64,000 bases of DNA from Octopus sinensis (GCF_006345805.1 NC_043014.1:39122001-39186000), one strand, 5' to 3'; positions 3,199-44,771 are shown, counted from the first letter of the stretch. Numbers and translations are program-made. Notes: a model not told the origin generated them from the sequence alone.

Positions 3199-3290
3199 GG
3201 AGGGACAAGCTCCGACAAATATAAATGCCCAAGACACAGTGCATGTCGCAATGACATCCCTGCTACTTCATCGAGAATTGAAAGCCCACA
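3199..3290 (+). CDS. Candidate exon E1 of zinc-finger gene (GGTSSDKYKCPRHSACRNDIPATSSRIESP)
   Basis: ctcccag acceptor after pyrimidine tract, gtaagg donor, phase 0 to 2, matches E2. Confidence 0.45.
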
Positions 3291-4304
3291 GTAAGGCAAG
3301 GCATATTATATCCGAGATGTGATACACATTCATTTTTAACCTGGTATACAGAAATTTAAAGATTTGGCTATTAAATTTAGCAAAACATGCAACTGCACAG
3401 AGTTTTTTTTTAATCAGAAACACCTCGATATATGCAAAATGGATCTTTTTAGTTATAACTCCATAACTCATCATGGCCTGTAATACCATGGTTTCAAAGG
3501 GTACATTTGTTCGGTTGGGCCTGAGAATATCTCATGGGTCCCTCTCTATAAAAAAGAATTTAAAAAAAAGAAAAAAAACCTCACAGCCAAACCCCGCCCC
3601 GTGTTTCGAAAGGATCCATCTATCTCCTTTAAATGGGCCTTGAAAGCAGTCACGCTCTGCTTTGAAGAAGTGCCTGTATACCATTTCAAATGAAAAATGT
3701 CAATTTGACAACCTAGTTTTCTATATCTCTGATTTATCTTCTCAAAAATCTGACTGATTAAATTGTATGTAATATGATGACTTCGGGTTGATATATGGCA
3801 ATGAGTAAAAAATAAATAAATAAATGAAAATAAGAAAGAAAGAAAGAAGCTTGGTTATTTGAAGCAAAAGTACATCGGTTATTTAGCTTATCGTGTTCTG
3901 AAAGCTTATCAGCTGTGAAAAGTTCATTTTTGTTATATGTGAATGCCTGGATATACCTTTGTGCATGTGTGTGTATGTGTGTGTGAAAGAGAGAGAGACA
4001 GACAGACAGAAAGAGAAAGACCCAGAGAGAATGTGTATGTATGTATCTGCAAAGTGCTTGAAAAATGTGAAACCCTAGAATATTTCGCGGGTAATTGAAT
4101 CAGAAGGACCCGGTATCTATAGCAGAAATGAATGTAGGTGAAGTTATAAATAGGCCTTAATGTTGGTGGTGAGCATCCCGCAGAACGATAGATATGTTTC
4201 AATGCTTAGATATGTTTGATATGCTTTGATATGCTTCAGTGTTAAGATAAACGTGTAAGTTTGATTCCTGACTACCTCTCTTCCTTATACATTTTTTTTT
4301 TACA

Positions 4305-4895
4305 TAGTATGGCTGTGTGGTAAGAAGTAAGCTTCTTACCACACAGCCATACTAACGTTAGCACGCCGGGCGAAATGCTTAGCGGTATTTCGTCTGCCAT
4401 TACGTTCTGAGTTCAAATTCTGCCGAGGTTGATTTTACCTTTCATCCTTTCAGGGTTGATAAATTAAGTACCAGTTACGCACTGGAATTGATGTAATCAA
4501 CTTAATACCTATGTCTGTCCTTGTTTGTCTCCTCTATGTTTAGCCCCTTGTGGGTAATAAAGAAATAGGTATTTCGTCTGCCGTTACATTCTGAGTTCAA
4601 AATCCGCCAAAGATGACTTTGCCTTTCATCCTTTCAGGGTCGATAAATTAAGTACCAGTTACTTACTGGGGTCGATGTAATCGACTTAATCCTTTTGTTT
4701 GTCCTTGTTTGCCCCCTCTATGTTTAGCCCCTTGTGGGCCATAAAGAAATAAGAAGCTTGCTTCCAAACCACATGGTTCCAAGTTCAGTCCCACTGTGAG
4801 ACACCTTGGGCAAGTGTCTTCTACTATACCTTCTGGCCAACTAAAGCCTTGTGAGTTGATTTGGTAGACAGAAACTGAGAGAAGTCCATTGTATA
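4305..4895 (+). mobile_element. SINE family B 5' part, interrupted by a family A SINE
   Basis: Head tggctgtgtggtaagaag resumes as cttgcttccaaaccacatgg after the insert; taagaag repeated either side. Confidence 0.75.
4355..4750 (+). mobile_element. 5'-truncated SINE family A (dimeric body), nested
   Basis: acgttagcacgccgggcgaaatgc...ataaagaaat with two body units. Confidence 0.85.
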
Positions 4896-5126
4896 TATTG
4901 GTCCTATTGTGTTAAACTGTCGTATGTCCAAATTTGGCCAAATGCATTCTTTTTGTTTTTTTTAGTATTTTTTTTGCTTGCAATCACTGGTTCTTTTGGT
5001 CAAACTATCGTGTCTGCTTCAGATGCCAAGATATCAAAAATTGTCAAAGTATAGTACAACGGTTTTGCTTTGGAATGGTGAACCTACTTTTTTTGTTTTC
5101 TGAAAAAGCAACATTTTGGACTTACG

Positions 5127-5289
5127 ATCATCATCATCATCATCATCGTCGTTTAACGTCCGTTCTCCATGCTAGCATGGGTTGGACGGTTCGACCGGGG
5201 TTCTGGGAAGCCAGAAGGCTGCACCAGGCTCCAGTCTAATTTGGCAATGTTTCTACAGCTGGATGCCCTTCTTGCATAATAGCAACTCT
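5127..5289 (-). mobile_element. Retroposon family D 3' fragment with (GAT)n tail
   Basis: (cat)n cgtttaacgtccgttctccatgctagcatgggttggacgg, shared with 35905, 42368, 54838. Confidence 0.75.
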
Positions 5290-5640
5290 GTGTGTGTATG
5301 TACGTATGTATATATATATATATATATATATATATATTATATATATATATATTATATATATATATATATATATATATATATTATATATATATATATATAC
5401 ATACGTATATGTGTGTGTGTGCGTGTGTGTTTGTCCCCACCCCTGTCATCGCTTGACAACCAATGCTGGTATGTTTATGTTCCCATAACATTAGCAGTTC
5501 GGCAAAGGAAACCGATAGAATAAGTACTAGGCTTACAAAGAATAAATCCTGGGGTTGATTTCTTTGATCATTAACCTTTAATGCAGTGCTCCAGCATGGC
5601 TTCAGTCAAATGACTAAAACAAGTAAAAGAATAAAAGTAT
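5290..5640 (+). mobile_element. (TA)n/(TG)n tract plus 3' half of SINE family B
   Basis: tttgtccccacc...cagtcaaatgactaaaacaagtaaaagaataa. Confidence 0.7.
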
Positions 5641-6362
5641 ATATGCAAATATCATAAAGGACTGTCTATATGGCCTGACCTGCTAGAAATAGCAACGAAA
5701 TCTTCCTCCCATCTTAGAAAATAGAAACAAAGACACAATGGATAATATAGTATGTTGCATGGGAAAAAAAGACTGAATGGTCATGAGTGGAGAGTCTTTC
5801 ATTATAAGCCTGCTTGAGCATGTGATTTCACATAGGATTAAAGAATAAAAATATAAGAAAATGGTAAGGCAGTAAGGTACAGTATCTTAGTTTCATCTCT
5901 ATTGATTCTGAGTTCTAATCCTGCCAGGAATAGGGAATTCGTAATGATTTCTTTCTGCAGCACAAATCGATTAATACTGCACTTGATTAATACTTATTTT
6001 ATCAACTCTCAGAATGAGAAAATGTGCCAAGATAAACAGAACAGTGGCACTGTATAAGAGAATGGGCTATAGCTGATGAGATTGACCTCTGTCTGTGGCT
6101 ATCTGAACATCACTATAACCATCACTCGAAGAAAAGCAATACACTGGAGCCGTTACATTCTCAAACACAGCATACATAGATAAGAATTGGAATTTAAATC
6201 CATAAGGTCCCAGGGCAATTACTTTGAGTACCCATGCCTGAAGACAGTAGTACCCCTGCCTACCTTTCCTCTGCTTGATTTGTACCTACTTTATCAACAC
6301 AGGAGGGATGAAAGGTGAAGTCATCTACAGAACATAAACTTATGAAAATACCATAACACATA

Positions 6363-42367: not shown

Positions 42368-42951
42368 TCATCATCATCATTGTTTAACGTCTGCTTTCCA
42401 TGCTAGCATGGGTTGGATGATTTGACTGAGGGCTGGCAAACCAGATGGCTGAACCAGGCTTCAATCTTGATCTGGTAGAGTTTTTACAGCTGGATGCCTT
42501 TCCTAATGCCAACCACTCCGAGAGTGTAGTAGGTGCTTTTACATTCTACGGGCACGGGGCCAGTTAGGCGGTACTGGCAATGACCTCGCTCGAATCTTTT
42601 TACACATGCCACCGGCACAGGTGCCAATAAGGTGATGCTGGTAACGATCACGCTCGAATGGTGCCTCTTACATGCCACTGGCACGGAGGCCAGTTAGCCA
42701 CTTTGGCAACAATCATGCTCGGATGGTGCTCTTAGCACCCTACTAGCACGGGGCTTAAGTGCCAGGAAGGTGACGCTGGTAACGATCACACTCAAATGGT
42801 ACCTTTTATGTGCTACACGCACAGAAGCCGGTTAGCCGCTCTGTCAACGATCACTCGTATGGTGCTCTTTGCACCCCGCTAGCATGGATGCCAGTCATCA
42901 AATTTGATTTTGATTTTGATTTCACTTGCCTCAACAGGTCTTCGCAAGCAG
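42368..42951 (-). mobile_element. Retroposon family D, long copy with internal subrepeats
   Basis: Reverse complement of 57720-58159. Confidence 0.8.
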
Positions 42952-43086
42952 AATAAACCAGTATTTTCATATTTTACACAATCATCAGGTTTATGTAGTG
43001 ACAATCATGTTCTACAATTGACGTGGAACACGTCTATCACTACATAACCCTGATGATTGTGGAATGTATGAAAGTACTGGTTTATT
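42952..43086. repeat. 135-bp imperfect hairpin
   Basis: ~50-bp arms aataaaccagta..tatgtagtga / tcactacata..tactggtttatt. Confidence 0.8.
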
Positions 43087-43486
43087 TCAGTATAGTAAAA
43101 TTGTAAAAATTGAAAATAATAACATCAGACTAAGTTGGAATTTCATTGATTAATATATTCTTCTATACACAACCATGCAAACTCAGGTGTGTGTGTATGT
43201 GTTAATATTGAACAGTGAGAATGAGTGCTGAACACCACATTGGTGACTAAATGTTCTTTATTCGTGGGTTAACAAAGCTACCATTGGTTTCATGTCGAGT
43301 GAAATCTCTCAATAATTATCAAACCTGCCACATGGAATGTCGTTGTTCATCTCCATCTTGGATGGAAACACCAAGATGGAGATTAACACCAACATTCCAT
43401 GTAGAAGGCTTGGCTTGATAATTGTTGAGGTTTCTCTTGACATGGAACCAATAGTAGCCTTTTTAATGCACAAATAAGAAAAAGTT

Positions 43487-44070
43487 TATATATATATATA
43501 TATATATATATACATACATATATATACACACACACACACACACACATATATATATATATATATTTATACATATATATACATATATATACATACATATATA
43601 TATATACATATATATACATATATATATATATATATATATACATATATATACATACATATATACATACACACACACACATATATATATATATAAAAATATA
43701 TATACATATATATATATATACATATATATATATATACATATGTATATATATATATATATATATACACATATATATATATATTATATATATATACATACAT
43801 ATATGTACACATATATATATATAAATATATGTATGTATATATATATATATGTATATATGTACACACATATATATATATATATATATATATATATATATAT
43901 ATGTATGTATATATTATATATATATGTATATGTATATATATATATATATATATATATATATATATATATATATATTATATATATATATATATATTATATA
44001 TATATACATACATATATATATATATGTATATATATATATATATATATATATATATTATATATGTATATAT
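43487..44070. repeat. Long interrupted (TA)n tract
   Basis: Direct reading. Confidence 0.95.
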
Positions 44071-44686
44071 ATTTATACCATCATCATCATTATCATCATT
44101 TAACCTCCATGTTTCAGGCTGATATGGGTTGGGCAGTTTGATAGGATCCGGTGTGCCCGAGGACTACATCATGTTCCAGTGTCTGCTTTGTCATGGTTTA
44201 TTCCTCTGGATGCCTTGCTGAAGACCAACCGCTTTACAGCATATACTGGATGTTTATTTCATACTGTCAGTGTTACAAAGGTCACCAAGTGGCTTGCATA
44301 ACTACAAACCCCAAAGTGTGTGTGTGTGTGTGTATGAGAGAGTGAGGTAACTTAATGGTAGAGGATGAGCAGTAGAGAATTATAAAGTATGAGAGAAAAG
44401 GGCCAGCGCAGAGCAAGTTCCTTGCTGGACTATTTGCATTTCAGGAGAGAGGATAGCAACGATCAAATGCAGGTAGAAAACAATAAAAACAGTGGTGATG
44501 AGGAGGGGGTCAAGGTCAACCTTTATCATATGAGAGGGTTGACGATGGGATGGGCATCTACTTCAATAAATTCTGACTCAGGCAAGCATGAAAAAGTGGA
44601 TGGTAAATAATGATGATGATGATGTTGATGATGATGATGATGATGATGATGATAATATTGAAGATTATATGTACTTTCAATTTCAG

Positions 44687-44771
44687 ATTTTATTCCAGAA
44701 CCAATAGTACCATCATTATTAATACAAAGAATAAACAATATTTTAACCAGAAATTCCGACTTATATAATAG
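44687..44771 (+). CDS. Exon E12 (FIPEPIVPSLLIQRINNILTRNSDLYN)
   Basis: tttcag acceptor, gtaagc donor; only phase 1 to 2 is open, matching E11. Confidence 0.6.

Follow-up and report, generated by a model that had tools for sequence, protein, structure and literature searches.

Six of eleven exons called by eye in an octopus locus belong to an annotated gene for a J-domain protein with one probable C2HC finger

Class B J-proteins possess a Gly/Phe-rich (G/F) region and C-terminal DnaJ substrate-binding domains, to which DNAJB9 adds an N-terminal signal peptide. Schizosaccharomyces pombe Mug185, a J-domain protein, is the source of the product name "meiotically up-regulated gene 185 protein" carried in RefSeq by XP_029647562.1, a 500-amino acid (aa) protein encoded by a + strand gene of Octopus sinensis. 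We have investigated a 64,000-nucleotide (nt) stretch of O. sinensis DNA (GCF_006345805.1 NC_043014.1:39122001-39186000; the window, to which positions refer unless another locus is named), in which an earlier note made from the sequence alone had proposed a hidden + strand gene of 11 exons, here E1 to E11. It is highly probable that, of the eight coding exons of the annotated XP_029647562.1 gene, the window contains the seven at the 3' end, exon 1 being situated upstream, and that five of the claimed exons are false.

The J domain (PF00226) occupies aa 3-64 in proteins P0001-P0003, with E values of 4.5e-24 to 9.4e-25, and is the only Pfam domain above threshold. Its HPD motif, at aa 31-33, is invariant in the four aligned sequences; exon 1, which encodes it, is not part of the window. 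A J domain with HPD is common to the octopus protein and DNAJB9/ERdj4, the UniRef label of the O. vulgaris protein, whereas the octopus protein has an unrelated tail containing a C2HC finger. As the J domain starts at residue 3, there is no room for a DNAJB9-type signal peptide; the region after it is Ser/Asn/Arg-rich, not Gly/Phe-rich, and neither DnaJ_C nor another class B domain, nor any Pfam domain but DnaJ, was detected at E ≤ 1 in P0001. Assignment to class B or to DNAJB9 was rejected on these grounds, and the absence of both a G/F region and a DnaJ_C domain suggests a class-C-like rather than a DNAJB9-like protein. The J domain is also the feature in common with S. pombe Mug185 and the only possible basis of the RefSeq name; orthology beyond it received no support in a HMMER search made with the tail only, Mug185 itself not being directly compared. 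The tail shares with ZC2HC1-type fingers (zf-C2HC_2, PF13913; PDB 9y6s chain 4E) their spacing and a CxxCG..F......H core, significant phmmer matches being confined to the finger. ZC2HC1-type proteins carry finger arrays; in contrast, the octopus protein has a single finger, below the Pfam gathering threshold, fused to a J domain.

When the 409-aa translation of the claimed chain was used as a protein query, three octopod clusters were retrieved, all with an N-terminal DnaJ domain and covering 25-47% of the query: O. vulgaris CAI9737773.1 (P0001), clustered with O. sinensis XP_029647562.1 (P0004), from which it is one residue apart; O. bimaculoides LOC106872147/XP_052831161.1; and Argonauta hians GAB1603160.1. 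Three genomic loci were compared with the window, namely L001 of O. bimaculoides, L002 of A. hians and L003 of O. sinensis (GCA_006345805.1 CM016876.1). Identity of the window with L003 was checked at two anchor points only, window 8598 corresponding to L003 52713 and window 47300-47500 being 100% identical to L003 91415-91615. The offset is constant at 44115 and the annotated gene end falls exactly at window 47466, indicating that the window is the annotated O. sinensis locus and that the gene is already annotated. From this offset, the window would span about 39,122,001-39,186,000 of CM016876.1. It is therefore not hidden, models being present in the O. sinensis assembly and also in O. vulgaris, O. 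bimaculoides and A. hians. That the earlier note did not recognise the product as a known orthologue is explained by the location of the recognisable J domain in exon 1, ∼33.5 kb upstream of the window.

Alignment of P0001 and P0004 exon by exon (tblastn, 97-100% identity) assigned aa 222-500 of XP_029647562.1 to seven exons in the window. Exon 1 is 665 nt in length, open from its ATG and ends AAG/GTGAGT; ∼33.5 kb lie between it and the first position of the window, and the intron leading to exon 2 measures ∼42 kb. Exon 1 encodes the J domain and a Ser/Asn-rich low-complexity stretch. The lengths are consistent, as 838 nt in the seven exons plus 665 nt gives 1503 nt, equivalent to 500 codons and a stop. 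Thus the gene has 8 coding exons rather than 11. The proposal of a multi-exon coding gene on the + strand holds for 8598-47466, where 6 of the 7 in-window coding exons had been predicted to the base, and fails for five claimed exons.

Intronic DNA of O. bimaculoides is 80-95% identical to the window, so that conservation alone does not discriminate exons, whereas frame integrity does. In comparison with O. bimaculoides, E2, E6, E7, E8, E10 and the last exon differ at 34 of 753 nt with zero insertions or deletions (indels), and all AG/GT boundaries are kept. These differences comprise 20 synonymous and 14 non-synonymous changes, a ratio of non-synonymous to synonymous proportions (pN/pS) of 0.18. 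E1, E5 and E11 fall in N-gaps or unaligned stretches of L001, and E11 was compared with Argonauta instead. Argonauta introns are not alignable, and the true exons give collinear protein matches there for E2, E6, E7, E8, E10 (weakly), E11 and the last exon. A frame and splice sites that are kept, together with presence in gene models, were thus observed for E2, E6, E7, E8, E10, E11 and the last exon, but not for E1, E3, E4, E5 or E9, of which E1 and E5 are without an aligned O. bimaculoides orthologue.

Exon 2 (E2, 8598-8845, +) encodes aa 222-304, including the conserved motif FPKFFETFE...NMKYMHKHFF. It matches the O. vulgaris and O. sinensis models at 97.6-100% by tblastn, differs from O. bimaculoides at 11 of 248 nt without indels and with AG/GT kept, and is collinear with Argonauta at 61% aa identity. 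Exon 3 (E6, 23936-24003, +) encodes the first half of the C2HC finger, ELFSCAFCGLGFNLEEM, and is identical to P0001 and P0002 (100%), with 2 silent differences in 68 nt from O. bimaculoides and 82% aa identity to Argonauta. The second half of the finger, RIHERRC, is encoded by exon 4 (E7, 25576-25714, +) together with the motif FTAEPYxEDRKTNLFF. Exon 5 (E8, 38398-38501, +), also placed by tblastn to the models, is 100% identical to P0001, 94% to P0002 and, collinearly, 60% to Argonauta, and is indel-free in O. bimaculoides. Exon 6 (E10, 39623-39698, +) is again 100% identical to P0001 and P0002, its 2 differences in 76 nt from O. bimaculoides being silent; the Argonauta match is weak but collinear (EWTPPLYT), and the stretch KSAWT..VYSSS is also kept in the transcript-derived protein P0008, described below. 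Exon 7 (E11, 44687-44771, +) is part of both the O. sinensis model and the O. vulgaris model, and its Argonauta orthologue (L002 78581-78665) has the same length of 85 nt, ag and gt ends, and 78% aa and 85.5% nt identity.

The last exon (47349-47466, +), which is not in the claimed chain, encodes KLDETNFLKLRSRCTSCQFVYSNGEEFICTCYISSRLM and terminates in a TAA stop at 47464-47466. It is matched by P0001 in tblastn, is identical to L003 and differs from O. bimaculoides at 4 of 118 nt with the stop kept. Its Argonauta orthologue (L002 79502-79619) is likewise 118 nt long, with 79% aa identity, a canonical acceptor and a TGA stop. An AATAAA at 47486-47491 (+), starting 20 nt past the stop codon, is, judged from its sequence, a likely polyadenylation signal.

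None of the five remaining segments, E1, E3, E4, E5 and E9, forms part of a gene model of the four species as determined by tblastn, and none has a collinear Argonauta match. E1 (3199-3290, +) lies in intron 1, exon 1 being joined directly to E2 in the models, and the orthologous stretch of L001 is an assembly gap. Intron 2 accommodates E3 (16902-17002, +), for which O. bimaculoides has a 1-nt insertion that shifts the frame and introduces stops, as well as CT in place of the donor GT; E4 (17082-17170, +), which has an in-frame TAG in O. bimaculoides; and E5 (19475-19596, +), which starts 44 nt past a 666-bp (CA)n microsatellite (18765-19430). Window positions 17013-20438, spanning E5, have no aligned O. 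bimaculoides counterpart, and the sole Argonauta match of E5 is non-collinear and on the minus strand. E9 (39378-39482, +), in the intron between E8 and E10, carries a 1-nt deletion in O. bimaculoides that results in a frameshift and stops, and the pyrimidine tract of its acceptor is lost there. Frameshifts and stops in a related octopod, as seen in E3, E4 and E9, are the very result that the earlier note had named as refuting its exons. Its ranking of the exons proved unreliable, as E6 and E10, listed as weak, are real and base-exact, while E3 and E9, counted as strong, are in no model and frameshifted in O. bimaculoides.

All 11 segments are present on the + strand at the positions claimed, flanked by AG on the 5' side and GT on the 3' side, the donors being GTAAG in nine, GTGAG in one and GTAAA in one. 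Together they measure 1229 nt, and the concatenate can be read in frame 0 without a stop. The required frame is the single open frame in E2, E3, E5, E7, E8, E9 and E11, which bears out the assertion made for E3, E8 and E9 but not that for an "E12", which is absent from the list of 11. For a null model, candidate exons were defined by a GTRAR donor, a YAG acceptor preceded by pyrimidines at 8 or more of 12 positions, a length of 60-260 nt and at least one open frame, and the longest in-phase stop-free chain under these loose splice-site rules was found by dynamic programming. Six Markov-1 random sequences of 42 kb each yielded longest chains of 633-2054 nt with 6-18 exons, compared with 1903 nt on the real minus strand and 2965 nt on the real plus strand. 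Since random sequence yields comparable chains, a 1229-nt, 11-exon chain picked by eye is no evidence by itself, and the chain statistic was rejected as evidence for a gene on the basis of the random-sequence and minus-strand nulls. The wrong chain remains in frame because E3, E4 and E5 sum to 312 nt and E9 is 105 nt, both multiples of 3, and because E1, at 92 nt, and the real exon 1, at 665 nt, leave the same remainder on division by 3. The claimed chain is thus composed of exons 2-7 of the gene and five chance AG...GT open frames in introns.

These results provide a calibration of exon calling by eye from AG/GT ends and an open frame, in which 6 of 7 in-window coding exons were base-exact and 5 of 11 calls false. 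In AT-rich intronic DNA, an in-phase stop-free chain carries no evidential value. The biological weight is small, this being an ordinary annotated octopus gene.

It is improbable, though the least so of the alternatives considered, that O. sinensis uses some of the unsupported segments, either E9 or E3, E4 and E5 together, as rare alternative cassette exons specific to its lineage. Their lengths would keep the frame and their splice sites are good consensus sites in this species, but the segments were picked for frame fit, which is consequently without weight, and they are not conserved as coding even in a congener in which the surrounding DNA is 89-92% identical. E5 in addition begins 44 nt past the microsatellite, in the stretch lacking an aligned O. 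bimaculoides counterpart. It is scarcely credible that one unannotated gene uses all 11 segments constitutively as coding exons: the AG/GT ends and the open chain speak for it, but random sequence also yields chains as long, five exons are missing from the models of four species, none of the five has a collinear Argonauta match, and E3, E4 and E9 are disrupted in O. bimaculoides, with the E3 donor lost. The opposite extreme, a wholly chance construct in repeat-rich non-coding DNA, would agree with the non-significant chain statistic and with the abundance of micro- and minisatellites and repeats in the window but can be dismissed, as six exons fit annotated proteins to the base at a pN/pS of 0.18, exon lengths and splice sites are kept in Argonauta, and spliced transcripts of relatives exist.

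Several observations nevertheless weigh against the reading preferred here, an annotated eight-exon gene whose product would act as a J-domain co-chaperone. No Octopus RNA-seq or cDNA contig over these junctions turned up in the protein collection searched, so that the Octopus exon joins rest on gene predictions and cross-species conservation, and the gene models of three species disagree at the 3' end. With respect to the protein, the finger scores 10-11 bits in Pfam against a gathering cutoff of 27, and the AlphaFold2 (AF2) model, built from a 4-sequence alignment, has a mean predicted local distance difference test (pLDDT) score of 43 and is usable only for the J domain and the finger. The co-chaperone mechanism and a client-selecting role of the tail are, moreover, what we infer.

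The disagreement at the 3' end involves a candidate alternative terminal exon at 40812-40882 (+), encoding VDVLANTYYPVRKCLYPGTVRWL followed by a stop, which in the O. bimaculoides models replaces E11 and the last exon. It is matched by P0002 in tblastn, and in O. sinensis it is intact, its acceptor reading ttttacag and its frame staying open up to a TAG; no counterpart was found in the comparison with Argonauta L002. The O. bimaculoides models themselves end in the terminal exon VDVLPNTYYPIRKCLYPGTVRWL and a stop. The stretch of L001 expected to hold the E11 orthologue is interrupted by two N-gaps, 51836-52658 and 53307-54255, and the last exon is conserved in O. bimaculoides past the end of its model. 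Either the O. bimaculoides-style terminal exon represents a short alternative isoform, or it was mispredicted on account of the gaps; judged from the sequence, use of 40812-40882 could yield a shorter protein without the conserved CTSCQ...CTCYISSRLM end. The Argonauta model GAB1603160.1 (L002 71800-79619) ends in NLFQKQ and a stop, which is the E11 orthologue translated in a wrong frame, apparently through omission of the exon equivalent to E10. It looks truncated, as intact orthologues of E11 and the last exon are present in L002, and both the Argonauta and O. bimaculoides models look truncated or mis-joined at their 3' ends.

The Cys-rich end encoded by the last exon (47349-47463), RCTSCQFVYSNGEEFICTCYISSRLM, is near-invariant between Octopus and Argonauta and has C-x2-C...C-x-C spacing. 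By its sequence it could represent another motif, for metal binding or of a lipidation type; P0008 lacks this end, which was modelled with low confidence.

The product had been described as Ser/Asn-rich with Cys/His fingers, of which one C2HC finger, encoded across E6 and E7, is substantiated and the plural is not. The finger, CAFCGLGFNLEEM/RIHERRC, has C-x2-C-x11-H-x3-C spacing, as read in CAFCGLGFNLEEMRIHERRC, and is split by the E6/E7 intron at the slash. It matches PDB 9y6s_4E, a "C2HC/C3H-type domain-containing protein", at a phmmer E of 6e-4 and the multi-finger zf-C2HC_2 protein P0007 at 3e-10. In the AF2 model it forms a beta-hairpin followed by a helix (beta-beta-alpha) with a pLDDT of ∼80. 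Sequence and predicted fold together make one C2HC finger across exons 3 and 4 a well-supported assignment, probably of ZC2HC1 type. A second "finger" in E8 (CACPKNASMKKIHLPSC) is conserved among octopods and missing in P0008, and was not counted as a feature of the family. Pfam comparison of the tail alone gave sub-threshold matches only, including Rb_C at an E of 0.0017, which is below cutoff and was judged to be chance. Apart from the finger and the helical J domain, AF2 predicts disorder for the remainder of the protein except for two short helices, suggesting that the in-window tail is mostly disordered, with a few conserved short motifs and one finger.

With the 278-aa in-window tail as query, an exhaustive HMMER search through 1.84 billion representative sequences recovered 21 proteins at E ≤ 0.001. 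Only two matched the tail beyond the finger, the octopus (O. bimaculoides) cluster and P0008, both of which have an N-terminal J domain; the other 19 matched best at residues 84-115 or close by, which is the zinc finger. P0008 and a related protein, P0033, which are 529-541 aa in length, are encoded by spliced transcripts in Logan contigs L004-L006 (SRR27666073, SRR27666076 and SRR27666069), P0008 being considered a spliced mRNA product as it originates from ∼2-kb Logan RNA-seq contigs. In one uninterrupted open reading frame (ORF), P0008 contains the J domain with its conserved extension, the Ser-rich stretch, an FxxFE motif and the finger, with a different C-terminus. P0033 has a J-domain match and is 57% identical to the tail of P0008, over 98% of its length. 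These transcripts are probably derived from another cephalopod lineage. No relatives of the same architecture were detected beyond octopods and these two RNA-seq transcript clusters, and a literature search by the gene accessions and the three SRR numbers returned no matching paper.

We tentatively suggest, at somewhat less than even odds, that the protein belongs to a cephalopod-restricted family of J-domain co-chaperones in which Hsp70 recruitment is coupled to a single ZC2HC1-type finger through a long disordered tail. From what is known of the family, the product would be a class-C-like J-domain co-chaperone whose J domain docks onto Hsp70 and stimulates its ATPase, while the finger and the conserved motifs of the tail may select a client or a cellular location. 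If this is correct, the family represents a lineage-specific innovation in the Hsp70 network; a J domain paired with one ZC2HC1-type finger is a so far uncharacterised combination.

Repeats and transposon-like fragments are distributed in and around the gene. An interspersed repeat occurs as 226-bp tandem dimers (97% matches) at 9022-9471 and 17873-18322, with related ORFs at 29929-30315, 34853-35251 (-) and 50892-51155, all copies having ...HKIINH.TNNNSEHLFKLHPSNTRGHIYKVRKQHSSHDFRK.FFTLRVAEVW. This family resembles the 3' tail of a retroposon; one copy gave no match in Pfam. ORF fragments at 45061-45522 (-), inside the intron that separates E11 from the last exon, and at 58325-58591 (+) share ...HPPYSPDIAP(S/L)DFHLFRSLQNSL..., which resembles the C-terminal part of mariner/Tc1-type transposases. 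Ten repeat-like ORFs from introns and flanks, including these fragments, returned nothing from Pfam at E ≤ 0.01. Besides the (CA)n array beside E5, simple repeats include (TA)n at 43487-44077 (591 bp), (TATC)n at 39970-40549 (580 bp) and a 39-nt minisatellite of 10.5 copies at 37823-38232, which ends 165 nt upstream of E8. A (TCA)77 array at 59690-59919 yields long spurious ORFs on both strands between 59353 and 60276.

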